Positions 25,089 through 62,327 of a stretch of 64,000 nucleotides of DNA are shown here, in pieces; position 1 is the first letter of the stretch; every line of letters begins with the position of its first letter. The translations under genes were made by a program, and so were the position numbers. Where the stretch lies: positions 181,964-245,963 of IMG/VR virus record IMGVR_UViG_3300005941_000003; one strand, given 5' to 3'. The notes under the pieces are model-generated. The model had not been told where the DNA came from, did no database searches, and worked only from the letters and a program-made list of their open reading frames with translations.

Positions 25089-25973
25089 TTACACTGCCAT
25101 TTCTGCTTTAATAAACGGGTGTGGGTCATACCCAACAATCTCAAAATCATCCATCGTAAAATCATCAATATTTTTAACATTTGGATTAATTTTTAGTTCA
25201 GGAAACAGACGTATATCCTCTGCCCGTGACAACTGTTCCTCAATGGCATTTTTATGGTTCATATAGATATGAGCATCACCGATTGTGTGAACAAACTCGC
25301 CAACCTTCAGATCACAAACTTGTGCAATCATATGTGTTAGTAGAGCATATGATGCAATGTTGAACGGAACACCTAGAAACAAATCTGCACTACGTTGATA
25401 TAGATTGCAAGACAGTTCGCCATCGTTGTTGACATAAAACTGTGAGAATGTATGACACGGCGGGAGCGCCATAGCATCGATATCAGACACGTTCCAAGCA
25501 CTTAGAATATGACGGCGTGACTGAGGATTTGTTTTAATCTGTTCGATTAGTTTAGCAAGTTGGTCAATGCCATTCCAGTTACGCCACTGAACGCCATATA
25601 CAGGTCCTAACTTCTTAACTGTGTCTGTGTTCTCATATCCTAGAGCAACCCCCTGTGCGTCTGCATTCGCAGTCCAAATAGTAGTTTTGCCTACAAGTTC
25701 TTCTCTTGGCTTTCCATAATGAATTTCAGCAAGTCTACGTTCATCGTCAGAACCCTCAATGAACCAAAGCAATTCACTTGCTACTGCATTGAAGTTTACT
25801 TTCTTTGTTGTAAGTAGGGGAAACCCACGGTTTAAATCAAATATGAGCCATGCCATAAAACGTGACTTTGTTCCTACACCTGTTCGTTCTTGATCACGAA
25901 CTTCACCTGTATCTAGTACAGTATACAGAAGGTCAAGGTAATCACCTTCTGCCCAGATTGATTTTGTTGTCAT
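25089..25973 (-). CDS. thyA: Thymidylate synthase
   Basis: RTGVGT, FPLLTTK, LGPVYGVQWR, MALPPCH, YQRSADLFLGVPFN; ATG 25973. Confidence 0.97.
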   Translation of the reverse strand: MTTKSIWAEGDYLDLLYTVLDTGEVRDQERTGVGTKSRFMAWLIFDLNRGFPLLTTKKVNFNAVASELLWFIEGSDDERRLAEIHYGKPREELVGKTTIWTANADAQGVALGYENTDTVKKLGPVYGVQWRNWNGIDQLAKLIEQIKTNPQSRRHILSAWNVSDIDAMALPPCHTFSQFYVNNDGELSCNLYQRSADLFLGVPFNIASYALLTHMIAQVCDLKVGEFVHTIGDAHIYMNHKNAIEEQLSRAEDIRLFPELKINPNVKNIDDFTMDDFEIVGYDPHPFIKAEMAV

Positions 25974-26491
25974 TAGTTTGCCTCCCATATTGAAAATTGT
26001 ATTCCCGGACCACTACGTGTTGCAGCTTCCGAGGTTGAGCTAACTATGCTCTTGTTCTCTATGTATTTGCTGATGTCACAAAATGTATCACAACGGTACT
26101 TACCATGTATGTCAGTTAGATATACTCTATCGCAAATTTTGTATGCAGCATCGTATAGCGTTTTACCACCTGTAATGAACACTTCTCGTCCTGGGTGACG
26201 GAACTCAATTGATAACAGAATGTCTTCTATTTTATCGTGAGTTGGGTCGTAGGTGTCAAACACACCTGGAAAGTTGAACATATTTTGGGAGGATACAACA
26301 TATTTTATTGCGTTGTCGCTGTTATGATAGTATGTGCCCGAACTTCTCCACGTGTTCGATCCCATAACGACGACATTACCTTCAGTTATTTTCTGAAAGT
26401 ATTTCATGTCTTTATCGTTCTTTGGCCATGGTAGACCATTCTTATAACCTATGCCGCCGTTTTCATCGGCAGCAATAATCATATTAATCAT
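25973..26491 (-). CDS. folA: Dihydrofolate reductase
   Basis: IG.KNGLPW...D.KYF, VVMG..TW, ITGG..LY, CDTF. Confidence 0.9.
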   Translation of the reverse strand: MINMIIAADENGGIGYKNGLPWPKNDKDMKYFQKITEGNVVVMGSNTWRSSGTYYHNSDNAIKYVVSSQNMFNFPGVFDTYDPTHDKIEDILLSIEFRHPGREVFITGGKTLYDAAYKICDRVYLTDIHGKYRCDTFCDISKYIENKSIVSSTSEAATRSGPGIQFSIWEAN

Positions 26492-40565: not shown

Positions 40566-41438
40566 TCAAGTCCCCCAGGCGTTCCCGAATAGAGATATGT
40601 GGAGTCTTGGTGTAAATCTGTATCCTTTTTGCATACAGATGTTTGCGACCTCTTGGACTGTGATATCATATCCTTCACTGCGCCCGCCCATTGGCATAAG
40701 ATAAACCGGACAATCGATGCCATGACTGCGATATTCTGCAACAGCGCGATCAACTTCCTCCACGTCTGTACGATCAGAGACAACAAATTTGAGATACAGA
40801 TTAGTACCCAAAGTAGTGATATAATTGTGTACGACATCAGGTCTAATAGCGTCTTCCCAACGTTCTCCAGAAACGGAGAGTTTAGGCGAGCATGAAAATG
40901 TGAATTTAATTCTCTTTTGGTTTCCAATGTAAGTTCGTAGACTTTCATGTAGAAACTGTGTGGAGTTTGTTTCGAATGTGACATTTTTCAAGTCCTTCAT
41001 TTTCGGATGTTCGAATAGTTCGATGTAAAGTTTCTGCCAAGCAAGTAGAGGTTCACCGCCAGTTAGAATTAGATGAACATCTTGTCCGTTATCTTGGATC
41101 CACTTACCTTCAGGTGTTAGACTGAGTAGTTGTTCGACAACTTCATCAATCGTCTTATCCATAACAAGGTGTCTAAATTCTGGGTAGATGCTTGCATACG
41201 TGTCACAGCCAGTATGAATGATTGGTAGTTCTTCAAACTTAGTAACACGATCCAAGATGCCAGTATTTAGTAGTTCTTCAACCTCTGGGTTGTAGTGTGT
41301 TTTTTCTCGTCCGCGTGGCAACCCAAAGTTCTGACATCGAAAGTTACATCCGAAGGTGCGAAGAAATACGCTGGGAACCCCAACGTACTGTCCTTCACCT
41401 TGCAGCGAATAGAATGCTTCTGAATATCTTAGTTTCAT
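40566..41438 (-). CDS. queE: 7-carboxy-7-deazaguanine synthase (radical SAM)
   Basis: E.FYSLQGEG..G.PSVFLR..GCNFRC...CDT, TGGEP, ETN, SPKL, PRLH. Confidence 0.9.
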   Translation of the reverse strand: MKLRYSEAFYSLQGEGQYVGVPSVFLRTFGCNFRCQNFGLPRGREKTHYNPEVEELLNTGILDRVTKFEELPIIHTGCDTYASIYPEFRHLVMDKTIDEVVEQLLSLTPEGKWIQDNGQDVHLILTGGEPLLAWQKLYIELFEHPKMKDLKNVTFETNSTQFLHESLRTYIGNQKRIKFTFSCSPKLSVSGERWEDAIRPDVVHNYITTLGTNLYLKFVVSDRTDVEEVDRAVAEYRSHGIDCPVYLMPMGGRSEGYDITVQEVANICMQKGYRFTPRLHISLFGNAWGT

Positions 41439-41605
41439 TCTAATTCAATGCCTTCCAATGTGTTTAACACTTTTTGTTTTGCTTCTTCTAGCGTAGTTGC
41501 TTCTACTGTTGCAACAATGCGTGTACCATCTGATTCTAGATCAAAGTCTACAACGCTTTTGATTTTCAATGTAAGCGGCTGTTTAAAAATGATTGTATGT
41601 TTCAT
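41435..41605 (-). CDS. 56-aa hypothetical protein MKHTIIFKQP...
   Basis: ATG 41605 to TGA overlapping the queE start (ATGA). Confidence 0.55.
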   Translation of the reverse strand: MKHTIIFKQPLTLKIKSVVDFDLESDGTRIVATVEATTLEEAKQKVLNTLEGIELE

Positions 41606-41606
41606 A

Positions 41607-41726
41607 TTAAAAATATCCCATCATTGCTGAAATAGCAACAGGTCCGCCGACCATCATTAGCATAATAATCGTTAATGCTAGAGGAAGTCCTTTGCCTGTG
41701 CAGTAGTTTTCTTTATGGTCGTTCAT
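41607..41726 (-). CDS. 39-aa small membrane protein MNDHKENYCTGKGLPLALTII...
   Basis: ATG overlaps the folE stop (ATGA); single hydrophobic helix. Confidence 0.55.
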   Translation of the reverse strand: MNDHKENYCTGKGLPLALTIIMLMMVGGPVAISAMMGYF

Positions 41727-42424
41727 CGCGGTGCAAACTCCTGCTGTAGCTTAATGTTGTCAAAGAATTCTTGTTTAACATGTGGGTTATTGAAGAATGA
41801 ACCCTTTAGCACTGTTGTCTGTGTTAGTGAACTGTGTGCCATAATGCCACGATTTTCACAACAACCATGTGTCGCTTGAATGTAAACACCTACATCATTT
41901 GATCCAGTTGCTTTCATGATTTCACGTGCAATGTCCATTGCAAGTTCTTCTTGCAGTGTACCTCGTCTTGCACACCATTGTGCGATACGTGTATACTTGC
42001 TTAGACCAATCAATTTGTCTGCTGCAATGATACCAATGTATGCAACACCTTTAACTGGTTGGTGATGGTGTGAACAAACACTTGTGAGTTCACTGCGAAC
42101 AACTAGCATGCCTTCATATTTTTCGTTTGTGATATTGTCAGGTTCATTTGGAAATGCAGTTGCATTTGGAGCAGGATTGTATCGTCCTGACATAAGTTCG
42201 TTGACATACATCTTTGCAAGTCTACGACCTGTATCCATGCTATTTGGATCGGTATGACGATCAATTACGAGAGAATCTAGAATACCTTCGAATCCCTCGG
42301 TTAGTTCATCAATTATCATGTCATATTCTTCTGGCATAATGAAGTTTGCAATATTATCGCCTGCCCAATATCGTGCGCCAGCTTCTTCGATCCGGTGTTT
42401 AATAATTTCGGAAGTCTTTCTCAT
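41723..42424 (-). CDS. folE: GTP cyclohydrolase I
   Basis: CSHHH, IGLSKY.RI, RR..LQE, HGC...RG. Confidence 0.95.
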   Translation of the reverse strand: MRKTSEIIKHRIEEAGARYWAGDNIANFIMPEEYDMIIDELTEGFEGILDSLVIDRHTDPNSMDTGRRLAKMYVNELMSGRYNPAPNATAFPNEPDNITNEKYEGMLVVRSELTSVCSHHHQPVKGVAYIGIIAADKLIGLSKYTRIAQWCARRGTLQEELAMDIAREIMKATGSNDVGVYIQATHGCCENRGIMAHSSLTQTTVLKGSFFNNPHVKQEFFDNIKLQQEFAPR

Positions 42425-42455
42425 GTACTATGTTCCTTAGTTAGATGTGGTAATC

Positions 42456-42498
42456 CCACTCATGTTTTATTATAGCATGAGTGGATGTTAGAAGTCAA
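42456..42498 (-). promoter_or_regulatory. folE promoter TTGACT-N18-TATAAT with a 9-bp inverted repeat flanking the -10
   Basis: CCACTCATG (42456-42464) and CATGAGTGG (42476-42484). Confidence 0.6.
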
Positions 42499-43559
42499 TA
42501 GTTTTTTAGAATGTCAATAAGTTTTGTTGCGTGATAGAATTTCTGCACACGTTCTACTTCCTGTTTCATCAAAAACTGCATATCAGAATTTTTGCTCATT
42601 TGCATACGAATGTACGCTTTGATGTTTGCAATGTTCTTCTTTGCTGCTTCTAGGTTTGTAGTCCATTCACTTGGATATTTGAATGTCTCATCCCACATTT
42701 CACTGTAAGATAGACGATCCGGTACCATTGGTATTGCACCCACAACAAGACCTTCGTATACTGAGATACCAAGAGTTTCCTGTAAGTTTGCACTGAATAC
42801 CAATTTTGCTTTACCAAGTAACGTATGGTATTCTGGTTTGGTTAAATTAAGTTCTTGACATTTGATGAACTTATATTCGGGCATTTGTTCAGCAATGTAG
42901 TCAAAAATCTCGGGCTGTTTCTCAGGAGCAATTCTGTGAGGGAATAGAATAATGTCCTCTTTCGCCATATTCTTATACTCACTAAGTTCAGTTTCAATAT
43001 ATTCCATAGGCCATCCTACTTGTCTAATAGAGTGAAGTAGCTGCCTGTCGATATCACGGTCATCGTTCCAGAACGTATTTGTAAACAAGTCGATATGGAA
43101 CTTTGTTGCAAAGAAGTTGTCGTCATAACAATCATACATTGACATTTCCGCGTTACGAACCCATGGCTTATCACCGATTAAGCGACCTAGAAAATCTTGG
43201 GGATCATAGCTACCAGCATGCCAGAGTCCACCAATTCGGAGTTTTATCCCAAGCAATTCTGCCATATATTTCAACTGGATAACAGTGGGATTCCACGCAT
43301 CGGTATAGAGAAAGTAGTCACCATCTTTGATCTTACCTTCACAGAACAGTTTTGCTATTTGTTCTAACTGTGCGCTCTTATAGATATTTGTACCGCCAAA
43401 GTTGAGAAACGCTCCGGGAGTAGTTGCAGCGGGAATGTCTGTGGGACCTTCGATAACTGTAACGTCAATTCCGTTCTGTTTCAACAATGCGGGGAAATGC
43501 GTCTTCCATTGTTTGGTATAGCGGGATTCAACGCTTTCCAAGTCTATAAGATATAACAT
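42495..43559 (-). CDS. Glycosyltransferase (GT-B, GT4-like)
   Basis: FPHRIAPEKQP, ETLGISVYE (Ex7E), VPDRLSY. Confidence 0.75.
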   Translation of the reverse strand: MLYLIDLESVESRYTKQWKTHFPALLKQNGIDVTVIEGPTDIPAATTPGAFLNFGGTNIYKSAQLEQIAKLFCEGKIKDGDYFLYTDAWNPTVIQLKYMAELLGIKLRIGGLWHAGSYDPQDFLGRLIGDKPWVRNAEMSMYDCYDDNFFATKFHIDLFTNTFWNDDRDIDRQLLHSIRQVGWPMEYIETELSEYKNMAKEDIILFPHRIAPEKQPEIFDYIAEQMPEYKFIKCQELNLTKPEYHTLLGKAKLVFSANLQETLGISVYEGLVVGAIPMVPDRLSYSEMWDETFKYPSEWTTNLEAAKKNIANIKAYIRMQMSKNSDMQFLMKQEVERVQKFYHATKLIDILKNY

Positions 43560-43572
43560 TCTATTAAACCTT

Positions 43573-44106
43573 TCAGAGAATGTGTAGATGTTCTAGTGCT
43601 TCGTATCCAAACCAGATACCAAACGCGAGATATGCCAAATAACCAAATTTGAAAACATATCTCTTGTATTCACTATTTCTAGCAAATACAAATACTAATG
43701 CAGCAAGAACTGCTGCTACGCCAGCCAACAACCAATTGCTTGCTGGATTAAGTAAGAGTGCCGAAAAGATTTCAAAACTCTCACGTGCATACACAAAGAA
43801 CACAGTAGCAACCGCTATAACAATGCTACTTGCACTACGAATTTCTTCTAAGTGTTCCTTGATATGTGCAGTGATGTCCTTGCTTTTTACAAACAGATAA
43901 AAGAACAATACGCTAAGAATAGCATACATTGCCCATTCATAATCTTCAAGAACATCGTGTAGGAAATATGCAGCGAGTACGCCACCGATTAATCCCACAA
44001 AACCCGATGCATAGATGTTTGCAGATTTTGTATACTGCGTTAGCATCAAAGTGATGAATGCGATTTCTAAGCATTCAATTAATGTCACCACAAAACTTGT
44101 GATCAT
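43573..44106 (-). CDS. FTR1/EfeU-like iron permease (short form)
   Basis: Multi-TM with IECLE and RESFE (RExxE-type) motifs. Confidence 0.6.
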   Translation of the reverse strand: MITSFVVTLIECLEIAFITLMLTQYTKSANIYASGFVGLIGGVLAAYFLHDVLEDYEWAMYAILSVLFFYLFVKSKDITAHIKEHLEEIRSASSIVIAVATVFFVYARESFEIFSALLLNPASNWLLAGVAAVLAALVFVFARNSEYKRYVFKFGYLAYLAFGIWFGYEALEHLHIL

Positions 44107-44661
44107 TTATTCTTCCTTCAAAATAGAATACACGTTGTATCCGCGATCCCGCAATTTCTGCGCACCACCAAGGAACTCTAGATCCATGATAGCAAGTACG
44201 CCAACTACGTTTGCATCAAATTGCATGATTAACTTAGTAACTGCTTCAAGAGTGCCACCAGTTGCAATTACATCGTCAATGACAAGTACACGATCACGTG
44301 GATTCATTGCGTCAATTTGTAGATGCAATTCATCTTTACCGTATTCTAGTTCGTATGTAGTTGATACTGTTTCACCTGGAAGTTTCCCACGTTTCCGCGC
44401 CATCGCGAAGGGCTTACCGGTGATTGCACTAAGAGCACCTGCCATGGGAAATCCACGCGCATCAAGTCCTACAATACGATCAAACTCAATACCATTTGCA
44501 TTGATATAATTTTTAAACAGTGTTACTACTTTTAGTAGTCCCTGCGGATGATTAAAGATACTTGCCATATCTTGATACATCACTCCTTGTCGAGGATGAT
44601 CTGGTACTACGCGCACCATTGCTTGAATTTCTTCTTTAGTTGGATGTTCAATTACTGGCAT
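44107..44661 (-). CDS. apt: Adenine phosphoribosyltransferase
   Basis: GLDARGF, RKRGKLP, YELEYG, VIDDVIATGGT. Confidence 0.93.
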   Translation of the reverse strand: MPVIEHPTKEEIQAMVRVVPDHPRQGVMYQDMASIFNHPQGLLKVVTLFKNYINANGIEFDRIVGLDARGFPMAGALSAITGKPFAMARKRGKLPGETVSTTYELEYGKDELHLQIDAMNPRDRVLVIDDVIATGGTLEAVTKLIMQFDANVVGVLAIMDLEFLGGAQKLRDRGYNVYSILKEE

Positions 44662-45097
44662 ATTCGATTAACGCTCCGTTTTCACCATCTTCTGAGATTT
44701 CAATCTTTACGTCACGATTTGGATATCTGTTTGCAATTTGCATGTATAGATCATCGGACATCATTTCGCAAGATTTATAATCTAGATCAAGTACGTCTTC
44801 GTTGTACAACTTTTCAAGCCAGCGTTTGAATTGAATAAACTCAATATCGCGGTCATTGTGTGTGACAGTAACAGCCACACGAAAATGAAAAATATGACGG
44901 TGAGGGACGCCAAGAAATGATACGTCATCCCAATCACCTGTCGCTAGTTTAGGATCATCTTTTGCTGCTGGATAGCAGTGAATACCTTCACGTTTGAACG
45001 TAACCCAAATCCATCGCTTTGCTTCATTCATTGATTTTTCGATTGTCATATCTTGTTTGCGTCCTTCATCGCGCATATAATCGTAGTAGTTACTCAT
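44648..45097 (-). CDS. QueD/6-pyruvoyl-tetrahydropterin synthase-like T-fold protein
   Basis: GIH.Y, HRHIFHF, SCE, ISEDGENG; context with folE/queE. Confidence 0.7.
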   Translation of the reverse strand: MSNYYDYMRDEGRKQDMTIEKSMNEAKRWIWVTFKREGIHCYPAAKDDPKLATGDWDDVSFLGVPHRHIFHFRVAVTVTHNDRDIEFIQFKRWLEKLYNEDVLDLDYKSCEMMSDDLYMQIANRYPNRDVKIEISEDGENGALIEYASN

Positions 45098-45269
45098 TCA
45101 ATCCTAGCTCTTTTTCCATTGCTAGAATCTCTTGTTTTAGTCGGAGTTTTTGAACTTTTAAATCACTTACATCTAGACGTATACTATACTCTTTTTGTAC
45201 CTGATTGTCAAGATCACGGTGTTCTTTTTTTAGTTGTTCTAGTCTTTGTAGTTTTTTGTCTTTGGTCAT
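45090..45269 (-). CDS. DUF465/YdcH-like small coiled-coil protein
   Basis: L..EHRDLD....LK..KL.LK.EI; GAGGAGG RBS. Confidence 0.7.
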   Translation of the reverse strand: MTKDKKLQRLEQLKKEHRDLDNQVQKEYSIRLDVSDLKVQKLRLKQEILAMEKELGLNE

Positions 45270-45279
45270 AGTTTCCTCC

Positions 45280-46842
45280 TCAGCCAAATAAATCTGCTAC
45301 ACCTTCTGGTTCAGCATATTCTTTCTTCTTACCCTTGATAGCTTCGATGAATTCTTCTGTACGAATAGCTGGTTCTTCGAATTCCATACCTTCTGGAACT
45401 GTACTAGTGTCTTGGACGCGTGAACCTTCGCACTTGCGCAAAAAAGCGCGATAATCCGTCAATAGCTGCATAGGGTCTTTAGTTTTAGGATCAAATAGAA
45501 CCTCAACAAATTTAGCAAAGTAAAGAACTGTATCTGGTACAGATTCACTTAGAATAGAAGGTTTCTTTGGATCCAAGTTCATATTGGTAATGTCAATTTT
45601 ATCTCTTACCATTTCATATTCGTGATCGAACCTGCGTATTGCATCTTGCATTCCACGGATATGATATTCAGTGTTGTGTGCTTGAACAAGGATATAAGAT
45701 AGACTATCCCAACTTGATTTTGCTGGTTTACCGTTTCGATTTAGCATCCCCGGTTGCATGTAATTAATATCTCGCATGTTTAGGCGATCACCAATTTCAC
45801 CAGAATACATCCACGGCTGTTGGTCCCGGCTCAGGTCCTGACGCCATTTCAGTTGCTTGGTTTTATAACTCCAAGCATTGCCGTTCAAGTCGGGATAGTC
45901 ATACGCCAATCCTTTCGATGCTGTAATATAAGGAGATGCTGCATCAAAAGAGATTGTTATATTTGGATTTACATGCTCTCTTAGTTGTCGCTGGACCGCT
46001 GTTAACATAGCACCCCATGGGAGAACGCTAATACCAAGAGTGTGAATCCAAACATCATCTTGGTCAGCTTGGCCAAGAAGTCCATCATCACGCAAACGAA
46101 TTAGTCTGCGTAAAAGTAGTTCTGCATCACCAGCGTGGTCACCTGCCATAGCATAGCCTTCGAAGGCACGATCACCATACACTGATTTATCATTGAAATG
46201 TTTTACACCCTCATACCACATTTCACTTGTTTGCCAATTAGAGCCGTGAAGTGTGTTCAAGAACTTAGTCTTGCCGGGTGTGCGATTGTTAATGAAATAT
46301 TCATGATTGAAGATAGTTTTTTTCAAACAATCTTCTGGATCTTTAAGACCTGTGCGACCACGATACTGTGGTAGCCATGCCCAAAGAGGAATATCAAGTG
46401 TCATTGAATAGTCACAATATTCTTCAAGCCACTTTAGAATGTCATGTCTTACTTTCTTCCAGTCTGCACCGTCTTCAAAGTTTGTCCAATCAAGTTTCCA
46501 AGCGCCTGAACCGATTTGATACCCGCCACTATCGCCAACAAGAATAGTATGTTCACGATTACGATTAACAACCATGCCATCATCAATTTTTGATCCTTCT
46601 AGGTCTAGGTTCGCATGTCCCGCAGAGTATAGGCCATGTGAATAATACACATAGCCTTTCTCTTTGTCAAAGATGTTAAGACCATCTAGACCGTGTTCAA
46701 ATCCTTGTGGGATTCGCTCTGGCGGGAACATGTCAGTTGTGCCCGCATAATGCTGTGAGATTTTGCGAACATAAAAGTTTGAGATTGCGGGAAGAAAGAT
46801 TGCATACCCGCTATCTTTATTGTTCTTGCCAAAGTCTTTCAT
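45280..46842 (-). CDS. DpdA/TGT-like guanine transglycosylase
   Basis: GDSGGYQ, MTLDIP, HTLG, SFDAASP, C-terminal AHN; no TGT CxCxxC zinc motif; adjacent to QueD-like gene and clamp. Confidence 0.75.
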   Translation of the reverse strand: MKDFGKNNKDSGYAIFLPAISNFYVRKISQHYAGTTDMFPPERIPQGFEHGLDGLNIFDKEKGYVYYSHGLYSAGHANLDLEGSKIDDGMVVNRNREHTILVGDSGGYQIGSGAWKLDWTNFEDGADWKKVRHDILKWLEEYCDYSMTLDIPLWAWLPQYRGRTGLKDPEDCLKKTIFNHEYFINNRTPGKTKFLNTLHGSNWQTSEMWYEGVKHFNDKSVYGDRAFEGYAMAGDHAGDAELLLRRLIRLRDDGLLGQADQDDVWIHTLGISVLPWGAMLTAVQRQLREHVNPNITISFDAASPYITASKGLAYDYPDLNGNAWSYKTKQLKWRQDLSRDQQPWMYSGEIGDRLNMRDINYMQPGMLNRNGKPAKSSWDSLSYILVQAHNTEYHIRGMQDAIRRFDHEYEMVRDKIDITNMNLDPKKPSILSESVPDTVLYFAKFVEVLFDPKTKDPMQLLTDYRAFLRKCEGSRVQDTSTVPEGMEFEEPAIRTEEFIEAIKGKKKEYAEPEGVADLFG

Positions 46843-47598
46843 TTAGTTTCCTGATTTTGCTGGTAGAATGTATTCGTATAGACCAAGACCACTATCGACT
46901 TGGATCATCATCGCACCTTGATCTGAAATCTTAATGCTCATTGATGAAGTATCACCCAGCTTTAGAATTGTAAGAACTGTTGAAAGTGGAAAACTCCAAC
47001 CAGTCTTTAGTTCACCGTTTACATTACGTGCGAAAGTCAAGTCTGCTTTATCAGTTGACGCGTCACCGATTGTGAACTGTAGATCACCATCTACTGTTTT
47101 CACAGTGAACAGTGGATCATATGAACTTAGAATTGCTGCTGTTTGCTGCAAGTCTTTAACTGCTTGCTGTGATGGCATGATTTCAACATCCCATTTTGCG
47201 CCTTTGAAGTTTGCGGTCTTGATCTGTGCATCAACTAGTTCACTTACGATAACACGATAAGTTGAACTTAGAATGCCAGGAATAGTAAAGTTAAATTCGC
47301 TAGGAACTTCTTCGCCATTGCGTTCTTGGCGACCGATTTCTACTTGTGTAGTTACAACTTCGCCTTCATTGTTGCGGCTTTCATAACCTAGATAACCGCT
47401 TAGAACACCAAGACGACCTAGACCGAATTTACCTTCAAACGCTGCTACGCGTTCATGTAGTTTTGCACGAAGAACAACAGTACGATCATCGTCCATCGCG
47501 TCTAGAGTTGTGCTTTCTGCATCTGTAGTTACTTTTACTGCTTGGATGATACCAAGCGAGTGAGTGTGTTTTACAATATCTTTCAAAATGTCACGCAT
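46843..47598 (-). CDS. DNA polymerase sliding clamp (gp45/PCNA-like)
   Basis: 251 aa, beta/alpha pattern ending YEYILPA, near the DNA polymerase. Confidence 0.7.
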   Translation of the reverse strand: MRDILKDIVKHTHSLGIIQAVKVTTDAESTTLDAMDDDRTVVLRAKLHERVAAFEGKFGLGRLGVLSGYLGYESRNNEGEVVTTQVEIGRQERNGEEVPSEFNFTIPGILSSTYRVIVSELVDAQIKTANFKGAKWDVEIMPSQQAVKDLQQTAAILSSYDPLFTVKTVDGDLQFTIGDASTDKADLTFARNVNGELKTGWSFPLSTVLTILKLGDTSSMSIKISDQGAMMIQVDSGLGLYEYILPAKSGN

Positions 47599-47625: not shown

Positions 47626-47654
47626 ACTATATCACAAGTCGAAAAAGTTGTCAA
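47626..47654 (-). promoter_or_regulatory. Sigma70 promoter TTGACA-N17-TATAGT for the clamp gene
   Basis: Embedded in the 3' end of the methyltransferase gene. Confidence 0.6.
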
Positions 47655-48204
47655 ATGCTTTTTCAACATCAATCTTTTCACCAATCTTTGGGTTGTCTAC
47701 CCAATGAATTGTATTTGGTGGCATGGTATCAAAGCCCCACATAAACCAAGCATTGCCGAATGTAGGATTGCCCTTACCAGTAAAGTCAACACGGTTGTTG
47801 TACACTAGTGCCGACATACCATATTCCATAAACATCTTTCCTCTTGCGCCACCTTGAAAACTTGCTACTGGAAGTAGTAGCGCAAATGGTTTACCCAAGT
47901 CGTAGCAATGCCGAAAGAATTTATCTTTGAGACTGTATGGTGGGTTCGTTATGATCCCATCATAAACATCATTATGTTCACAAGTAAAGAAATCCCTACC
48001 ATTACTCCCAACAATGCTATAGCCCCACTTAGTAAATCCATCCAAAATGTTTGAAGAAATTCCGCTAGTTGCTTCATAGTATGTCTTATCTTTATTTAGG
48101 TATGGTAGCAATGGTAGGACCTGATCTACAGGAGTGTAACATTCATCACTCTCTGCGTTTCGTCCTAGACTTGATACTAGTTCTGTGTATGTTTTTTTAG
48201 CCAT
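47632..48204 (-). CDS. Amino (N6A/N4C) DNA methyltransferase-like protein
   Basis: DECYTP, DFF, IITNPPYS, FALLLP. Confidence 0.7.
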   Translation of the reverse strand: MAKKTYTELVSSLGRNAESDECYTPVDQVLPLLPYLNKDKTYYEATSGISSNILDGFTKWGYSIVGSNGRDFFTCEHNDVYDGIITNPPYSLKDKFFRHCYDLGKPFALLLPVASFQGGARGKMFMEYGMSALVYNNRVDFTGKGNPTFGNAWFMWGFDTMPPNTIHWVDNPKIGEKIDVEKAFDNFFDL

Positions 48205-51002
48205 TAGAAATCAAACAAGTTATCAAAAGTTTCGCTAGTGTTTGCGTCACTCAAATCCCATTTAAGAACACCAATAAGGTTATCAATCTTCTTGTCGATG
48301 ATAGTCGTTTCCATTAGATCGTGATCAAACGGAAGTTCTTGGAACCATTTTGGAATGCGAGTTTCGTCAATAGGATACGCAATACTTGTAATCTTCATTG
48401 GGTTGTCACGAAGTTTACATACGATAGTTTTCATACCATCAACAATTTCAAGAGAATAACGGTCGCTGTTCATCTGTCGAAGTGTATTCCAATTCAACGC
48501 CGCAGTAACGTGACCTGGCATAGTTACTTTCTTGTTTTCTTCTTCTACTTTACCAAGTTTAAAGTCTGCTGACTGCTTACTTTTAAACTTATCGACCATG
48601 TTTCTAAACTTAGTCAAGTTGTTAACACGCTTTGGCGTTCCCTTTTCCCAACCCGGCCTACTGCGGAATTCTTTCTTGAATTCTTTCACCATTCCGATAA
48701 CGTCACTTTCGTTACCAACAGTTAGTACTTTGATAAGAACTTGCATCAAGAAATCTTGCATGTAGTCTGGCGTATCCGAACGCTTCAAGTCAAGACCCAT
48801 TGCTTTTACTTTGCCGGGTTTCCCGTCTACATCACGGCGAACACCATCATCATCATAGATCAACATTGCATAACGTTTCTTCTTAATAAAGATAGCCATC
48901 GTTGCTGCGTTTTCTCGTCCTGCTGCAATAATCTCACCTTGCTTGCGAGGACAGTTAAAGAATACTTTCATGAAGTCTGGGAAACTTGCGTTCACTTGGT
49001 TCGCAATTTCATCATACAGCTTGAGAACAATTTCTTTGTCCCATGCGATTTCACCACTATCGATTTGATCTTTGTATACAGGATACATAGAATAATAGAT
49101 AGAGTCAGTGTCACCGTAAATTACTGCTGGACCTTTGTAGTCATAGTCACCTGCAATGATTTCATTGGTCTTTGATCCCATGTGGCGAGTAATACAACGC
49201 CCAGACAGTGTAGTTGACTGACCAATACGTTTATCGTAGAAACGACAACCTTGGTTAAGAATAGCACCGTATAGTGAGTTCAAGTTAATTTTCTTCACTA
49301 GCTGACGCTTATCCCAGAATGCAATTTCTTCTGCATTCCCACCAGCTTGTGCTTCTTTCTTCTTCGCTTGTAGTTGCTTACGTTCTGCATACCATCGCTC
49401 AAGCAAACTCGGAATGATGCCTTGTACGTCCTGCTTGAATACTGTACCGTTCGCACTAATCGTCCATGGTAGACCTGAGTTGTATACTAGGTCGTACATT
49501 TCTGCGCCAGTGATTTCGTGCGTACTGCCATCTTCCATGTCAAGATGCAACATATTTGTCTTGTCTTGCCCATTCATGAAACGAAATTCTTCGGTCGTGA
49601 ATGTATCTTCCCATGCTTGTGCAGCACCAAACCCTTTGTTCGTGCCGCCTCTGCGACCTGTCGCAATGCGACCACTGATCAGTTGGTCAGTGTATGTTGG
49701 TCGCAACTGTGCTGTAATAGTCTCGGGTGACATGTTTAGCGCACGAATGATTGCCGGATACAGTGAGTTAATATCGATACCAGATACCCATTTTTGAATA
49801 CCAATTTTTGGGTTAGCAACAAACGCGCCTGCTGCTTTTTGTGCTTCTGCTTCTGCTTCTTCTTCTGGTGTGGGCTCGTAATCATCATCTTCCGTAGCCC
49901 AATCACGGCGCTTGCGATCTGGAACTACCATACCTCGACGGTGTGCTTCGTTGATGATTGCTTGCTCTGTAACAGCAACAGCACCCATAGTCGTTTGAAT
50001 ATTAACTGTGTTATCGTGCGCAATCTCGTTTGCTAGATCAATGAAACGTAGCTTCTTGTCTAGGTTGTCAAGTAGTGCAACGTCCTGCCTGTTGTATTCT
50101 ACAAACTTATAGAAGTCTTGGTTATACAACTGGTCTAGAGTACCTTCATATGCAATCTTACGTTCGCCAAGTTCATATTCACCAATCGCATCTAGTGAAT
50201 AAGAATGCATTTCGTGATATGTATACTTGCGATAAAGTTCAAGATAGTCGAGGTGAATACGACCAAACAGATTATAACTGATTTGATCTTTACCGTATTT
50301 CACCATCATCTTTTCTTTAGGAATCAAATCCCACAAACATAGCTTACGAGTGTGTGACTTAGAAAGCACACGTGTGATACGCCGAACAGTGTATGGAATA
50401 TCAAAACCTTCACTGTTCCAACCAGATAAAACGTCTGCATCGTCAATAAGTGCTAGGAAGTCATTCAACATATCTGCTTCACTGAGATACAAAAATGTAT
50501 TCTCAAACTTGTCGCATAGTCGCTGTGCTTCTTCTAACCCTTCACCCTCACGCATATGTTTAGGTGGGATAACAAATGTTACAAGTTGATCAAGCCACTG
50601 TAAATGTGTAGTAATCGCAGTGATTGGCATAAATGGATCTTCGGGTGGAGCAAAGCCGCGTTCTGCGTCAAAGTCCACCTCGATGTCGAAAAATGCAACG
50701 TTTAGTTTTGGCGAGTCAACATTCAGATAGTTTTCAGCGAGACAGCGAATTTCTGGCTTGATATCACTTTCGTAGATTTTCTTACCAGAGTTGATACGCA
50801 ATTCTTTGTGCATATCTTTAAGGCGCTTTACTTTAATCTCGCGTACTTTTTCTCCATGAATACTTAGATGGTCACCTCGATCATCGCGAATGTAGAATTT
50901 TCTCCATGCTGGATAATCTTGATAAACACGTTTTCCGTTGACACGTTCAACCACTTGAACAATGTCTTTGTCTTTATTATAATATGCGTCTACGTATGAC
51001 AA
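48204..51002 (-). CDS. Family B DNA polymerase (gp43-like)
   Basis: FFDIE, GWNSEGFD, YNRQD, DINSLYP, KINLNSLYG, YGDTDS, KKRY; TTG start after AAGGAG. Confidence 0.97.
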   Translation of the reverse strand: MSYVDAYYNKDKDIVQVVERVNGKRVYQDYPAWRKFYIRDDRGDHLSIHGEKVREIKVKRLKDMHKELRINSGKKIYESDIKPEIRCLAENYLNVDSPKLNVAFFDIEVDFDAERGFAPPEDPFMPITAITTHLQWLDQLVTFVIPPKHMREGEGLEEAQRLCDKFENTFLYLSEADMLNDFLALIDDADVLSGWNSEGFDIPYTVRRITRVLSKSHTRKLCLWDLIPKEKMMVKYGKDQISYNLFGRIHLDYLELYRKYTYHEMHSYSLDAIGEYELGERKIAYEGTLDQLYNQDFYKFVEYNRQDVALLDNLDKKLRFIDLANEIAHDNTVNIQTTMGAVAVTEQAIINEAHRRGMVVPDRKRRDWATEDDDYEPTPEEEAEAEAQKAAGAFVANPKIGIQKWVSGIDINSLYPAIIRALNMSPETITAQLRPTYTDQLISGRIATGRRGGTNKGFGAAQAWEDTFTTEEFRFMNGQDKTNMLHLDMEDGSTHEITGAEMYDLVYNSGLPWTISANGTVFKQDVQGIIPSLLERWYAERKQLQAKKKEAQAGGNAEEIAFWDKRQLVKKINLNSLYGAILNQGCRFYDKRIGQSTTLSGRCITRHMGSKTNEIIAGDYDYKGPAVIYGDTDSIYYSMYPVYKDQIDSGEIAWDKEIVLKLYDEIANQVNASFPDFMKVFFNCPRKQGEIIAAGRENAATMAIFIKKKRYAMLIYDDDGVRRDVDGKPGKVKAMGLDLKRSDTPDYMQDFLMQVLIKVLTVGNESDVIGMVKEFKKEFRSRPGWEKGTPKRVNNLTKFRNMVDKFKSKQSADFKLGKVEEENKKVTMPGHVTAALNWNTLRQMNSDRYSLEIVDGMKTIVCKLRDNPMKITSIAYPIDETRIPKWFQELPFDHDLMETTIIDKKIDNLIGVLKWDLSDANTSETFDNLFDF

Positions 51003-51596: not shown

Positions 51597-52589
51597 TTAC
51601 TTCTTTGACTTAACTGCCTTAGAAATTGCACTTTCCATAATCTTGTCTGCTTTTGCTGTTACTGCTTCTCCAACTTTTTTAGTATTAGGTGTGATAGCTT
51701 TTTTAATATCACCGATACCTTTTGTTGTAGTAGACCCCGCATTACCAAACTTTTGTTGTGCTTTATTGATTTGGTTACTTGCGATATTTGCCACGCCCTT
51801 TGCTAAACCACCAAGAACGCCTTCGTTTGTTGTCGCTAATTTCATCGCCGCGTTTGCAACTTTTAGAAGGCCTGCCTTACCAGTACCTAGCATATTAATG
51901 ATCTTTGCTTTGTTTGCTGCGTTAACTGCATCATATACTTTAACGATTGCTGATGCTGTGAACATATCAACTTTTGTTGAGCCGTCTACAAACTTGATTG
52001 AACGGGCTTGCTTTTCATCCACGATTTTACGTAGGTTAAACAATGCTGCACGACCTGCACGTTCTTCATCTGTTTTAACTTCGATGGAACCCATTGTTGT
52101 GTCTTCTTCTTTCATCTTTTTCTTGTGTGATGAACCACATGATTCTTCCATTTCTTCTGCTTCTGGTTCATTGTCCATTACCGCAGCATAATCTTCCATG
52201 TCACTGTCACTTGGCATTTCATCGTCTGCTGGTAGGTTCATGTCCATACCGCCCATTGCATCGTCTGCGCCCATGTCGCCACCTAGTTCAGGCTCATTCA
52301 TTGCACCCATGTCTGCCATAGGCTCGTCCATTGGCACTAGATCAGTTGACTCTGAACCATCTAGTTCTAGAGTATGTAGTCGTGCGAAAAGTGAGTCTGA
52401 CATGCGCGTGTATGCGTCATATGAACTATTGTGTTGCTTTGCAAACTGTAGTGCTAGGTCGTGGACTGCATCACGTGCATTTTTGCCTGATTGCACTTCT
52501 TGTGCTAGTTGTTCTGTTGCTCTATCTAGGTAATCTTCAAATTCGTCATTAGAGATTACAAAAGATTCGATTAGTTGTGACAGTTTCAT
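51597..52589 (-). CDS. Hypothetical late protein, acidic Met-rich linker (putative head-internal protein)
   Basis: MKLSQLIES N-terminus; KVDMFTASAIVKVYDAVN..NK module. Confidence 0.6.
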   Translation of the reverse strand: MKLSQLIESFVISNDEFEDYLDRATEQLAQEVQSGKNARDAVHDLALQFAKQHNSSYDAYTRMSDSLFARLHTLELDGSESTDLVPMDEPMADMGAMNEPELGGDMGADDAMGGMDMNLPADDEMPSDSDMEDYAAVMDNEPEAEEMEESCGSSHKKKMKEEDTTMGSIEVKTDEERAGRAALFNLRKIVDEKQARSIKFVDGSTKVDMFTASAIVKVYDAVNAANKAKIINMLGTGKAGLLKVANAAMKLATTNEGVLGGLAKGVANIASNQINKAQQKFGNAGSTTTKGIGDIKKAITPNTKKVGEAVTAKADKIMESAISKAVKSKK

Positions 52590-52600
52590 TTTTTTCTACC

Positions 52601-52810
52601 TTATCTTTTAATCATTGGATTTTTAACGGGCTTGTTATACACAAGATTACCTACATCTGAGCTATAACCCATTTCATACTGTTTTTTCTTTTTCTTGGAT
52701 CCATAAACAGATTTAATGGCGTCATCTTTCTTCGTGCCCGGTGTCATCGGCATCGCAACACCAGCAAAGGCGCCAGCAAAATTCTCGCTTATGATCTCTG
52801 AAATCTTCAT
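52601..52810 (-). CDS. Small late protein (putative head-internal)
   Basis: ATG 52810 after ATAAATA; MKISEIISE. Confidence 0.55.
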   Translation of the reverse strand: MKISEIISENFAGAFAGVAMPMTPGTKKDDAIKSVYGSKKKKKQYEMGYSSDVGNLVYNKPVKNPMIKR

Positions 52811-52821
52811 AGTAGTATTTA

Positions 52822-54015
52822 TCACTTTAAGTTAAGTTTGGGTTTACCGTCACGATCAACACTATTACCGTACTTTTTAACTTGATTGATAATCTCATTT
52901 GGTCCTACATCAACAGTTGTATTTACACCTTTAACGATACGACCAACACCAGCAGTTTCATTTACTTTCTTAACTGGGAAATAACCTTTAATAGTCTTAC
53001 CTAGTTGTTGTGCTGTTGCTGCGCGGTGGTTACCATCGATAACTGAATACTTGCCATCACTGTACTGAGGACCTACGATAATTGGACTTGACAAGTCTAC
53101 GCGATGATAATAGTCAATATCAATGACACGACCAAATGGGTCATCATAGTCAAAGAATTCTTCTTCGCTTGGGAACATGTCTGGTGTGAAGTCAGCTAGT
53201 TTCCAATCATGTGACTTGATGAACGCATCCATTTCATCGTTGTTGCCAGCATCGTGATGCATCTTTTGGAAGATACTTAACATTTCTTCGCCAGTTTCTT
53301 CATTAAATGCTTTTGCTGTTGCTGCATCTGCTTTTGGTCCGTCTGGGTGTCTTGGATTAACGCCAACAAGATCACCGTTCATTAAGTCTGATACGCTTGA
53401 TGCTTTACCAATCTTGTCTAGTAGTTTATGCAGCGGATCATTAGGATCATACGCAGTTTCATAATTTGATTTACCGCGAACTTCTGTACGTTTACCAGTC
53501 TTACTGTCTGTGATATGTAATACATCCATATCTTTACCACGTTCTAGCTGTAATTGCCAGCCTTCGTCCACTTTGACTGCACTATCGCTGTGAATTTCTG
53601 GGTGTACATTTGTACCTCCGATTTCTTTATACTCTGCGCCAAAACGATCAAGGATCGCCTTTACTCTATCAACTTGATCTTGGTTTGCAAGGGTCACAAC
53701 CATGTCACTTGCTCCCTGGCCCCATTCGTGTGGATCTTGCTGATTTAGTCGTGCAAAGTGCTGACCGAATTTATACCAATCCAAGTCACCAGATGTATCG
53801 ACTACAAGTGTATATGGTGGCATAGTAAGCAAGTCTTTTTGATAACCTTGTGGATCAGGTTCTTGTGCAACACTCTCCATATGCTTAAAATAGTTTACTT
53901 GCTTTTCGCGCTTTTCGGCACCAGCCTTAGTGTCGTAAGTGCCAAGATTTTTACCCTTTTTACTTACTAATCTATATTTGTCGCCTACTTTGCGAATTAC
54001 CTCATTGAATTTCAT
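52822..54015 (-). CDS. Modular late protein with a ParB/Srx-like module
   Basis: PIIV....VIDGNHR; several short modules. Confidence 0.6.
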   Translation of the reverse strand: MKFNEVIRKVGDKYRLVSKKGKNLGTYDTKAGAEKREKQVNYFKHMESVAQEPDPQGYQKDLLTMPPYTLVVDTSGDLDWYKFGQHFARLNQQDPHEWGQGASDMVVTLANQDQVDRVKAILDRFGAEYKEIGGTNVHPEIHSDSAVKVDEGWQLQLERGKDMDVLHITDSKTGKRTEVRGKSNYETAYDPNDPLHKLLDKIGKASSVSDLMNGDLVGVNPRHPDGPKADAATAKAFNEETGEEMLSIFQKMHHDAGNNDEMDAFIKSHDWKLADFTPDMFPSEEEFFDYDDPFGRVIDIDYYHRVDLSSPIIVGPQYSDGKYSVIDGNHRAATAQQLGKTIKGYFPVKKVNETAGVGRIVKGVNTTVDVGPNEIINQVKKYGNSVDRDGKPKLNLK

Positions 54016-61282: not shown

Positions 61283-61357
61283 TGGTAGCCCGTAGGGGAA
61301 TCGAACCCCTCTTTCTAGGTTGAAAACCTAGCGTCCTAACCGATAGACGAACGGGCC
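61283..61357 (-). tRNA. tRNA-Glu(TTC)
   Basis: Cloverleaf, CTAGG-TTTTCAA-CCTAG, GTTCGA, encoded CCA. Confidence 0.93.
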
Positions 61358-61429
61358 ATAAAAGATATACTATAACTGTTATCACTTTCCACAAACGGTA
61401 CCGGTATTTGTCATAGTATATCTTATTAA

Positions 61430-61504
61430 TGGCGGACTGTACGGGAATCGAACCCGTCTCCCTCGCGTGACAGGCGAGAATTCTAACCGATAAACCAACA
61501 GTCC
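61430..61504 (-). tRNA. tRNA-Asp(GTC)
   Basis: CTCGC-CTGTCAC-GCGAG, G73, CCA. Confidence 0.93.
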
Positions 61505-61513
61505 TTTATTTAA

Positions 61514-61540
61514 TGCTCTAACCAACTGAGCTACAACCGC
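61514..61540 (-). pseudogene. Orphan tRNA 5' fragment (acceptor strand and D-arm)
   Basis: GCGGTTGTAGCTCAGTTGGTTAGAGCA then abrupt AT-rich sequence. Confidence 0.7.
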
Positions 61541-61549
61541 AATTAAAAA

Positions 61550-61626
<77 letters not shown>

Positions 61627-61766
61627 GTGTTTAAAAATTTAGAATGTCTTGGGAAGTTTCGGTGATACGCACTTCATACTCTAAGTAAGGTTACGTCACA
61701 TAAATGTAGTTTAAATGTTAGTCTCTCCTAACAGTCACGCCGTCAACTGACGTTTGGAAACTTTAA

Positions 61767-62027
61767 TTATACACGCTTTGCTGTATATTGGAACACACCA
61801 TAATTTAATGGCGCGCCGAATTTCTTTCTTGCTTTCGCAAGTGCTGCTTCTTCGTTTGCTTCAATAACTGAACCTAGATTTTCAACACCAGCAGTGATGT
61901 TAAATGTAAACATTGGCGCAGCCTCTGCTTCGACAGTTTTTGTAATTGTTTTTTTACGTGTAGATACGTTTTTAGTAGGAGCCGCTTTCGCCGACACTCT
62001 TTTTGCTAAACCTGTACGCTTGATCAT
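61767..62027 (-). CDS. Small basic hypothetical protein (86 aa)
   Basis: ATG 62027, GGGAGA RBS, late-promoter motif at 62056; K/R-rich N-terminus. Confidence 0.65.
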   Translation of the reverse strand: MIKRTGLAKRVSAKAAPTKNVSTRKKTITKTVEAEAAPMFTFNITAGVENLGSVIEANEEAALAKARKKFGAPLNYGVFQYTAKRV

Positions 62028-62081
62028 GACTTTCTCCCATAAAGAACTTATACGGTATTTATCTGATTTGAGAAAGTGAAA

Positions 62082-62310: not shown

Positions 62311-62327
62311 TTATACGTTTATTTATA

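Follow-up and report, generated by a model that had tools for sequence, protein, structure and literature searches.

Why a glycosyltransferase should be embedded in a set of 7-deazaguanine genes was the question raised by this locus of a giant marine phage. A sugar on a purine in DNA has not been described. The window analysed is a 64,000-nucleotide stretch of the IMG/VR virus record IMGVR_UViG_3300005941_000003 (positions 181,964 to 245,963). A first-pass annotation had reported DpdA/TGT-like, QueD-like, apt, GT-B, folE and queE genes, co-oriented directly after the sliding clamp and without a local QueC, and had inferred a glycosylated deazaguanine. The observation was confirmed, with all six genes present and co-oriented after the DNA polymerase and a PCNA-like clamp. 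A membrane protein and a 56-aa ORF, which had not been mentioned, are also part of the locus. The features are collected in Table 1.

Table 1. Positions of the features in the 64,000-nucleotide window.
Feature	Position	Strand	Length	Assignment
PCNA-like sliding clamp	46843-47598	-		Syntenic context, directly upstream of the module
TGT/DpdA-like	45280-46842	-	520 aa	TGT/DpdA-superfamily transglycosylase, predicted to insert the base into DNA
Promoter ahead of DpdL	45183-45211	-		Near-consensus sigma-70-like, TTGACA-17-TATAGT, 11 of 12 matches
DpdL	44648-45097	-	149 aa	QueD/PTPS paralogue, proposed 7-carboxy-7-deazaguanine decarboxylase
APRT (apt)	44107-44661	-		Canonical adenine phosphoribosyltransferase, inserted between DpdL and the GT
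Membrane protein	43573-44106	-	177 aa	Polytopic, possible FTR1/OFeT-like permease relationship
GT	42495-43559	-	354 aa	GT-B/GT4-type glycosyltransferase
Promoter ahead of FolE	42469-42498	-		Near-consensus sigma-70-like, TTGACT-18-TATAAT, 11 of 12 matches
FolE	41723-42424	-		GTP cyclohydrolase I
56-aa ORF	41435-41605	-	56 aa	No family hit; its end overlaps the QueE start by 4 nt
QueE	40566-41438	-		QueE-like radical-SAM CDG synthase
Nucleotidyltransferase plus cupin	1222-1989	-	255 aa	Mannose-6-P-isomerase-type cupin, possible supplier of sugar nucleotide
tRNA-Asp(GTC)	61430-61504
tRNA-Asn(GTT)	63863-63938

The TGT/DpdA-like protein gave no Pfam or NCBIfam hit and belongs to a sequence family without a Pfam model, with more than 4800 homologues, all unnamed. 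Its AlphaFold model (pTM 0.76) matches tRNA-guanine transglycosylases, with a Foldseek E-value of 1e-7 at probability 1.0 and a VIA Z of 18.8 over about 308 residues. DSGGxQ (D104; DSGGYQ in the window protein), D150-x-P, H267xLG and S298xD300 are invariant across the window, PA5oct-type, Phosso, Magnetospirillum, ACP17 and BUCT-ZZ01 proteins. However, no sequence similarity to solved TGTs was detected and the protein contains only 3 cysteines, so the zinc site usual in the family seems to be missing.

The gene read as QueD-like is PTPS-like by the atlas search and hits phrog_17812, but it proved to be DpdL, the proposed CDG decarboxylase of Cellulophaga phage phiST. Blastp against phiST DpdL gave an E-value of 6.5e-17, and the protein carries the LxxxHRHxF motif (FLGVPHRHIF; L62xxxH66-R-H68-x-F70) that defines DpdL (PMC10516641) in place of the CxxxHGH of QueD. 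The canonical QueD lies about 160 kb away (67968-68357 on the sequence labelled G000). FolE was identified with PF01227 (E 6e-37), while NF006824 (E 1e-38) remained below its equivalog cut-off. QueE matched phrog_2076 (E 1.4e-51), with C31, C35 and C78 invariant in an unusual spacing of the cluster cysteines and TGGEP conserved. A PF06508 search for QueC found nothing in the 246-kb record, nor in a 342-kb, 92%-complete record with a 100% identical locus.

The glycosyltransferase had no Pfam hit, but its model (pLDDT 84, pTM 0.83) matches the GT4 enzymes BshA, MshA, PimB and QTMAN at E-values of 1e-9 to 1e-8. EX7E (E261, E269) and H208-R209..K214 are invariant, and at least 8000 homologues were found, at 58-99% identity among those listed. 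The fold match does not reveal the acceptor.

The APRT is assigned by NF002636 (178 bits, cut-off 125) and NF002634 (172 bits, above cut-off). It was present in only 6 of 83 related loci, the 6 being closely related to one another, and is a recent, lineage-specific insert and not a conserved pathway member. The same holds for the membrane protein, which occurs only in this phage. It was found in 2 of the 83 loci, both of them records with a locus 100% identical to the window's (L008, L009), and its OFeT_1/FTR1 atlas feature hits (0.89-0.90) are a lead only. The 56-aa ORF, without hits in Pfam, PHROG or NCBIfam searches, was likewise found only in records with a 100% identical locus. The clamp is 42% identical to the protein annotated as PCNA in phage PAC2 and was present in 81 of 83 loci. 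The two promoters are consensus matches only.

The conserved core is TGT-like, DpdL, GT, FolE and QueE. It is syntenic in 34 of 34 long IMG/VR loci and recurs in PA5oct-like phages, ACP17, Phosso and BUCT-ZZ01. In the 34 loci with at least 11 kb downstream, DpdL and QueE are each present in 34, whereas a window-type GT is present in 29 and a weak GT match (about 22% identical) in 3. The other two carry a different 399-aa ORF at the same spot, which in one of them (L045) gives a weak Glyco_trans_1_2 hit (E 0.004, below cut-off) and lies near a full sugar-nucleotide epimerase/dehydratase. Altogether, the GT follows DpdL in 60 metagenomic loci with a median gap of 259 bp. The two genes are also adjacent or near each other in at least 7 lineages of cultured phages, among them ACP17, the cyanophage BUCT-ZZ01, Phosso, PA5oct-type, Xanthomonas BUDD/X1 and Burkholderia BCSR5 phages. 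A compact GT-DpdL-TGT-like-PTPS cassette occurs in Magnetospirillum chromosomes without any PRTase, next to a nuclease-like gene, as in restriction-modification-type systems. Sugar-nucleotide genes sit inside some modules. The nucleotidyltransferase-cupin protein of the window (PF01467 and PF01050) is 48% identical to the product of 12306-13073 in another related locus, L006, where it lies directly before the GT.

The interpretation in the first-pass annotation was partly supported. The gene identifications and the reading as a 7-deazaguanine locus without QueC are right, the link between the GT and the pathway is much stronger than could be seen from one sequence, and no paper found in the literature search describes a glycosylated 7-deazaguanine in DNA. 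On the other hand, the locus belongs to the already described DpdL/dDG type (PMC10516641), and activation of the base by a PRTase, suggested there for the APRT, is unlikely to be essential. PRTases are absent from ACP17, Phosso and the bacterial cassette, which have a window-type GT, and from RHph_I1_18, where tblastn found no such GT. The PRTase common in the module of the wider family is Gpt/XPRT-like, and in this genome it is encoded elsewhere.

The reading that we favour, with moderate confidence, is a DpdL-type module that replaces guanine in the phage's own DNA with a 7-deazaguanine derivative to which the GT adds a sugar. FolE, the distant QueD and QueE would turn GTP into CDG, where the pathway would stop without QueC. 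Then DpdL, a zinc-site QueD paralogue, would convert CDG to the 7-deazaguanine scaffold, as proposed by Cui et al. 2023. The TGT-fold enzyme, which keeps the family's aspartates, would exchange G in DNA for the new base, and the GT could add a sugar from a nucleotide sugar either to the free base before insertion, as HuiG glycosylates N2 of a deazaguanine base, or to the base already in DNA. Of these steps, only the gene assignments are shown here, while the route to CDG follows from established queuosine biochemistry, the decarboxylation is a published proposal and not a demonstrated activity, base exchange is inferred, and glycosylation is inferred from gene linkage only, without chemistry from any phage with this module. 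Indeed, 7-deazaguanine offers no obvious hydroxyl for O-glycosylation after decarboxylation, so that the sugar would have to go on N2, on O6 or on a carbon, or DpdL would have to do something other than decarboxylate. The Gpt-like PRTase most likely recycles the excised guanine into GMP and GTP, the pathway's own feedstock, and the APRT would be a recent extra for purine salvage. The likely purpose is protection from restriction and other DNA-targeting defences.

[quoted passage not shown] However, the DpdL-GT pairing survives across very distant phages and in the four-gene bacterial cassette, a different ORF, weakly GT-like in L045, takes the same place where the window-type GT is missing, and sugar-nucleotide enzymes are embedded in some modules. 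In addition, ACP17 DpdL plus DpdA without the GT reportedly gave no dDG in E. coli, and the genome has one ordinary ThyA next to DHFR and no ThyX, with no sign of a hydroxymethyl-pyrimidine acceptor. A pre-replicative route following the logic of the tubercidin and toyocamycin pathways is unlikely, in which a PRTase would join CDG or 7-deazaguanine to PRPP, the nucleotide would be reduced, phosphorylated and incorporated by the phage polymerase, and the TGT-like enzyme would be secondary. The gene pattern does mirror tubercidin clusters, a PRTase lies within the flanks of 21 of 34 modules, GMPR is found in 3 and HIT in 16, and phiST has MazG and a kinase-like gene in its cluster. But PF00156 is absent from ACP17, Phosso, RHph_I1_18 and the Magnetospirillum cassette, while the TGT-like gene with intact catalytic motifs is universal. 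The Gpt/XPRT resemblance of the module's PRTases fits guanine salvage, the window's own PRTase is a canonical APRT of recent origin, and the GMPR is a canonical GuaC at 537 bits.

A tRNA target, which the first-pass annotation had kept as the alternative, is very unlikely. The phage encodes tRNA-Asp(GTC) and tRNA-Asn(GTT), whose position 34 might be modified and the sugar added as in mannosyl-queuosine, and tRNA-queuosine mannosyltransferase is among the fold matches of the GT. Nevertheless, the module is fixed between the DNA polymerase/clamp and RNase H in more than 80 loci, relatives have measured or inferred DNA modification, the bacterial cassette has its nuclease-like neighbour, and tRNA-His and tRNA-Tyr are not seen in the window. 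Equally remote is a pterin glycoside made by the GT and the PTPS-like protein from the FolE product, as cyanobacterial BGluT does, unrelated to DNA. FolE and a PTPS-like gene lie adjacent and the tetrahydrobiopterin glucosyltransferase 5zes ranks 23rd among the fold matches, but this match is no better than dozens of other GT4 matches, QueE and the TGT-like gene are always present, and DpdL lacks the catalytic cysteine of PTPS/QueD.

Among known systems, tubercidin biosynthesis also stops at CDG without QueC and includes a PRTase and a decarboxylation step, and its GMP reductase has a counterpart in some phage modules. Its decarboxylase is UbiD-type and not a T-fold protein, the product is a free nucleoside, and there is neither a transglycosylase nor a GT. 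tRNA-queuosine mannosyltransferase is named for acting on a 7-deazaguanine nucleoside in a nucleic acid, but its acceptor is the cyclopentenediol of queuosine in eukaryotic tRNA, and its fold matches (ranks 6 and 14) are not better than those of unrelated GT4 enzymes. In huimycin and dapiramicin biosynthesis, HuiG is a GT4-type GT-B enzyme (PF13439) that puts a sugar on a free 7-deazaguanine-derived base, at the 2-amino group (PMC7439116). This is an actinomycete secondary metabolite, whose base is preQ0-derived and so needs QueC, is O-methylated and is never put into DNA.

Phage DpdA1-4 and bacterial DpdA share with the window protein the TIM-barrel TGT fold, DSGGxQ, the downstream aspartates and the co-occurrence with deazaguanine synthesis genes. 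The window protein, which has a C-terminal extension, gave no hit to Pfam TGT or to the named DpdA-type proteins that were compared, and its closest viral fold matches are unnamed proteins, followed by a Vibrio phage nt-1 protein. The DpdL-type cluster of phiST (Cui, Hutinet et al., NAR 2023, PMC10516641) also has FolE, QueD, QueE, DpdL and a TGT-superfamily enzyme, without QueC and next to the replicative polymerase. It lacks a homologue of the GT and carries MazG and a kinase-like gene instead, and its transglycosylase is the short DpdA3 (259 aa), which is only marginally similar to a member of the window's family (locus L005; blastp E 0.23) and a weak fold match to the window's model (E 1.5e-3). 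In the Pseudomonas jumbo phage PA5oct and relatives (Wroclawvirus), the PRTase is Gpt-like, not an APRT, an SDR/epimerase fragment is present, and the chemistry of the modification was not found in the papers searched. The gene set and its order after the polymerase and PCNA are the same, with the TGT-like protein (38% identical), the GT (49%), DpdL (60%), a PRTase and QueE, and PA5oct DNA is reported to carry a modified G. It resists enzymes whose sites contain G and is targeted by nucleases that sense hypermodified bases (PMC12191111).

The window is the last 64 kb of a 245,963-bp viral record that CheckV rates as 67% complete. A 342,181-bp IMG/VR record, 92% complete, carries a 100% identical copy of the locus and served as a fuller genome of the same phage. 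The region is a T4-like replication block on the minus strand, in the order B-family DNA polymerase, a small NPPY methyltransferase-like gene, a PCNA-like clamp and then the locus. A megablast of the locus against phage genomes found nothing. Profile searches identified three of the genes. FolE was recognized by PF01227 (E 6e-37), and the phosphoribosyltransferase (PRTase) is a canonical APRT, above the cut-off of two equivalog profiles (NF002636, 178.1 bits against 125, and NF002634, 172 against 170). The third is a QueE-like radical-SAM protein, which matches the PHROG QueE-like family phrog_2076 at E 1.4e-51, although the NCBIfam QueE models gave only partial hits of 34-51 bits against cut-offs of 200-300 and Pfam Radical_SAM scored 25.8 against 29.5. 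Its three cluster cysteines, C31, C35 and C78, are invariant and the SAM-binding motif T126-G-G-E-P is present. The spacing of the cysteines, CX3C-X42-C, is unusual, with an insert of about 40 aa between the second and third Cys that is shared by the metagenomic, PA5oct-type and BUCT-ZZ01 proteins, absent in ACP17 (CX3CX2C) and short in phiST.

The 520-aa, 354-aa and 149-aa proteins had no Pfam or NCBIfam hit and no sequence match in the PDB, and only fold comparison worked for the first two, using models built on alignments of metagenomic homologues. The model of the 520-aa protein has the (beta/alpha)8 fold of tRNA-guanine transglycosylases (Foldseek against the PDB, E 1e-7, probability 1.0; VIA Z 18.8 with about 308 residues aligned). 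The 354-aa protein is, by its model, a two-Rossmann GT-B enzyme of GT4 type, matching BshA, MshA, PimB and glycogen synthase at E 1e-9 to 1e-7 with TM about 0.6, with tRNA-queuosine mannosyltransferase also among the matches at E 1e-9 to 1e-8. The EX7E motif (E261 and E269) and H208, R209 and K214 are invariant in 21 sequences; in GT4 enzymes, EX7E and the Arg/Lys residues that bind the diphosphate lie in the C-terminal domain. The window protein gives no hit to Pfam Glycos_transf_1, while one 76%-identical homologue carries PF00534. The observation made in the first-pass annotation, a deazaguanine gene set with a glycosyltransferase (GT) and a PRTase and without a local QueC, is therefore confirmed, and its gene list is correct, although it omitted a 177-aa membrane protein and a 56-aa ORF. 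Its interpretation is only partly supported, since the gene that it called QueD-like has a more specific identity, the APRT is not a general member of the module, and the glycosylated base that it proposed remains an inference.

The 149-aa protein was placed near PTPS clusters by the atlas search. In tblastn it hits the gene beside the MazG-like gene in Cellulophaga phage phiST (E 1e-8; pairwise blastp E 6.5e-17), which was taken to be the gene named DpdL by Cui et al. (CGPG_00067; PMC10516641). These authors defined DpdL by LxxxHRHxF replacing QueD's CxxxHGH, and proposed it as the 7-carboxy-7-deazaguanine (CDG) decarboxylase behind the dDG measured in phiST DNA, although the decarboxylase activity was not demonstrated in that paper. 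The window protein reads FLGVPHRHIF, with L62, H66, R67, H68 and F70. The His triad, a fourth His and three Glu (H40, H66, H68, H80, E86, E111 and E136) are invariant across eight members. A canonical QueD (PF01242, E 3e-17, 71% identical to ACP17 QueD) lies outside the window, and QueC is absent from both records, so that the genome context of DpdL, with DpdA, FolE, QueD and QueE present, also agrees. A literature search for DpdL returned mostly unrelated acronyms. Actinomycete DpdL-like hits were considered as natural-product clusters, but the Kitasatospora locus looks like a prophage, with RecT beside DpdL-QueD-QueE-FolE.

The family of the transglycosylase-like protein is very large, with 4827 proteins at E <= 0.001 among 8000 scored, all unnamed and without Pfam domains. 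In IMG/VR, 581 of the first 600 pattern matches are confirmed relatives. Among cultured phages it occurs only in PA5oct-like Pseudomonas jumbo phages (38% identical), Sinorhizobium phage Phosso and Vibrio phage 2.275.O. It does not match the Pfam TGT model (PF01702), and a profile of the family found no TGT in the PDB. Aligned with the ACP17 and BUCT-ZZ01 proteins that occupy the DpdA position, it shares DSGGxQ, D-x-P, HxLG and SxD. DSGGYQ (D104), D150-x-P and S298-F-D300 are invariant across 7 divergent members, including the ACP17-type DpdA, and were read as the TGT aspartates D102, D156 and D280 from the TGT motifs, not from a residue-level structural alignment. The protein has only three cysteines and shows no Cys-x-Cys-x2-Cys of the zinc site (Cys cluster plus His), while H389, N390 and H394 are invariant; not every DpdA subfamily is known to need this site. 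The best viral fold matches are unnamed proteins, followed by a Vibrio phage nt-1 protein, and phiST DpdA3 is a weak match. A literature search for DpdA5 returned nothing. The protein is therefore treated as a member of the TGT/DpdA superfamily but not of a named subfamily. Isoelectric points did not discriminate DNA-binding from small-molecule enzymes, since all the proteins are acidic.

Features of the locus, of the same genome and of related loci, with window coordinates unless a genome or locus is named
Feature	Coordinates	Strand	Remarks
B-family DNA polymerase	48204-51002	-	
NPPY methyltransferase-like protein	47632-48204	-	190 aa, phrog_799; between polymerase and clamp; only in the window's near relatives (11 loci)
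PCNA-like clamp	46843-47598	-	
Membrane protein	43573-44106	-	177 aa, two ExxE-type motifs; the atlas search points to FTR1/OFeT-like iron permeases (score 0.90, a lead only); inserted between APRT and GT in this phage only
QueE-like protein	40566-41438	-	
Sigma-70-like promoter site	47626-47654	-	11 of 12 consensus matches; just ahead of the clamp
Sigma-70-like promoter site	46642-46670	-	11 of 12 consensus matches; inside the TGT-like gene
Sigma-70-like promoter site	45183-45211	-	11 of 12 consensus matches; just ahead of DpdL
Sigma-70-like promoter site	42469-42498	-	11 of 12 consensus matches; just ahead of FolE
Nucleotidyltransferase plus mannose-6-P-isomerase cupin	1222-1989		next to the radical-SAM/SPASM protein; in related locus L006 its homologue lies directly before the GT
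Radical-SAM/SPASM protein	1982-3181		399 aa
Thymidylate synthase followed directly by dihydrofolate reductase	25089-26491		canonical ThyA, 342 bits
Nine tRNA genes	61283-63938	-	Glu, Asp, Pro, Val, Gly, Ala, Leu, Ser, Asn
Canonical QueD	G000 (this phage's genome) 67968-68357		
Gpt/XPRT-like PRTase	G000 52447-52989		
Protein of unknown function	L088 (related locus) 7320-7718		about 130 aa; homologues in 45 of 83 loci
DpdL followed by a macro-domain (Appr-1-p processing) protein rather than a GT	L089 (Rhizobium phage RHph_I1_18) 7408-8232		DpdL 60% identical
Bacterial chromosomal cassette	L108 (Magnetospirillum aberrantis SpK) 5182-10911		CoiA-nuclease-like, GT, DpdL, TGT-like, PTPS

Comparison of 83 related loci showed that the order polymerase, clamp, TGT-like, DpdL, GT, FolE, QueE is conserved. 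Among the 34 loci with at least 11 kb downstream, DpdL and QueE are each present in 34, a window-type GT in 29, a weak (about 22% identical) GT match in 3, FolE in 26, any PRTase in 21, HIT in 16 and GMP reductase (GMPR) in 3. The two loci without a GT match carry a different 399-aa ORF at the same position, which in one of them, L045, gives a weak Glyco_trans_1_2 hit (E 0.004, below cut-off) and lies near a full-length sugar-nucleotide epimerase/dehydratase and a GMPR. The 399-aa ORF of the window was suspected to match this alternative GT-like gene, but it does not and is the radical-SAM/SPASM protein. DpdL is followed by the GT at a median gap of 259 bp in 60 loci. The protein of about 130 aa represented in L088 (in ACP17, the gp between FolE and DpdA) recurs inside the module of the wider family, between the TGT-like gene and DpdL, and is absent from the window's phage.

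The same pairing appears in unrelated cultured phages. In ACP17, the GT is followed by DpdL and the two genes abut, and in the cyanophage BUCT-ZZ01 the order is QueE, a PRTase annotated as xanthine-guanine PRT, QueD, FolE, a GT-like gene, a DpdA-like gene, DpdL and GT. It was also found in Phosso, the PA5oct group, Xanthomonas phages BUDD and X1, and Burkholderia phage BCSR5. In addition, a scan of bacterial genomes found the compact Magnetospirillum set in M. aberrantis SpK and in four related Magnetospirillum/Rhodospirillaceae assemblies (loci L106, L107, L109 and L117). In the one locus that was annotated, that of SpK, it lies between a HEPN gene and a recombinase fragment, with no PRTase seen, and looks like a restriction-modification-type island built on the same chemistry. 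Many other bacterial hits are evidently phage contigs binned into MAGs. Contigs L093-L101 carry the whole phage module (polymerase, clamp, TGT-like, DpdL, GT) but are filed in MAGs named Methanobacteriota, Neomarinimicrobiota, Rickettsiales, Legionellales and others, and are most likely phage contigs binned with cellular genomes.

The window's APRT occurs in only six close relatives and the membrane protein only in this phage. Sister loci at 80% identity have DpdL and the GT about 570 bp apart, with neither insert. The wider family instead carries a divergent Gpt/XPRT-like PRTase inside the module, a gene that this genome has too, outside the locus. PF00156 is absent from ACP17, Phosso and RHph_I1_18, while it is present in phiST, which has no GT. 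Therefore, the PRTase goes with deazaguanine replacement and not with the GT, and it is dispensable. Salvage of excised guanine into GMP and GTP, the latter being the substrate of FolE, fits best, although this is an inference.

Regarding the GT, linkage argues that it belongs to the pathway, since it persists across lineages, it is replaced by another ORF at the same spot, and nucleotidyltransferase-cupin and epimerase genes sit inside some modules. The literature gives three supports: ACP17 DpdL plus DpdA alone gave no dDG in E. coli (PMC10516641), PA5oct DNA is reported to carry a modified G that has not been identified (PMC12191111), and HuiG, a GT4-type enzyme, glycosylates the 2-amino group of a 7-deazaguanine base. 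On the other hand, decarboxylated 7-deazaguanine has no obvious O-acceptor, phiST needs no GT, and the fold does not reveal the acceptor. Whether the GT could serve hydroxymethyl-pyrimidines was also examined, but an hmC or hmU acceptor is unlikely because, TET-type routes aside, the genome has one ordinary ThyA next to DHFR and no ThyX. A tubercidin/toyocamycin-type nucleotide route, in which a PRTase is an obligatory member of the gene set, does not agree with the lack of PF00156 in the three phages or of any PRTase seen in the Magnetospirillum cassette, and this purely nucleotide-level reading, like those in which the product is a tRNA modification or a pterin, is considered less likely.

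Taken together, the locus is, with high confidence, a real and widespread DNA-modification module of the DpdL type, while the proposal that the GT makes the final base a glycoside is held only tentatively, at about even odds or somewhat below. The gene identities, their conserved order and the absence of QueC from the two records rest on the searches, alignments and fold comparisons, whereas the exchange of G in DNA by the TGT-like enzyme, the decarboxylation of CDG by DpdL, guanine salvage by the PRTase and the transfer of a sugar are inferred. In the broadest reading, which is possible but less probable than not, guanine in the DNA of this phage, and of a very large, mostly uncultured group of big marine and soil phages that includes PA5oct, would be replaced by a sugar-bearing 7-deazaguanine, the first glycosylated purine known in DNA. 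It would be made by a portable three-enzyme core of a T-fold DpdL, a GT4 transferase and a new DpdA subfamily, and the same core in Magnetospirillum, next to a nuclease-like gene, would then mark self-DNA in a restriction-modification-like system.

The module is not a curiosity, since its transglycosylase family has thousands of members in metagenomes, at least 581 loci are present in IMG/VR, and it occurs in therapeutic-candidate Pseudomonas jumbo phages as well as other cultured relatives. If the GT does decorate the base, it would extend DNA glycosylation from pyrimidines to purines, it could account for the failure of the E. coli reconstitution of DpdL plus DpdA, and it would give a concrete target for the defence nucleases that sense hypermodified G. 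No paper describing such a base in DNA was found. 7-Deazaguanine DNA modifications are a known anti-restriction strategy with eight described derivatives, none of which carries a sugar. With its gene content, the locus belongs to the published class of FolE, QueD, QueE, DpdL and DpdA without QueC, and differs from phiST in the GT that accompanies DpdL.
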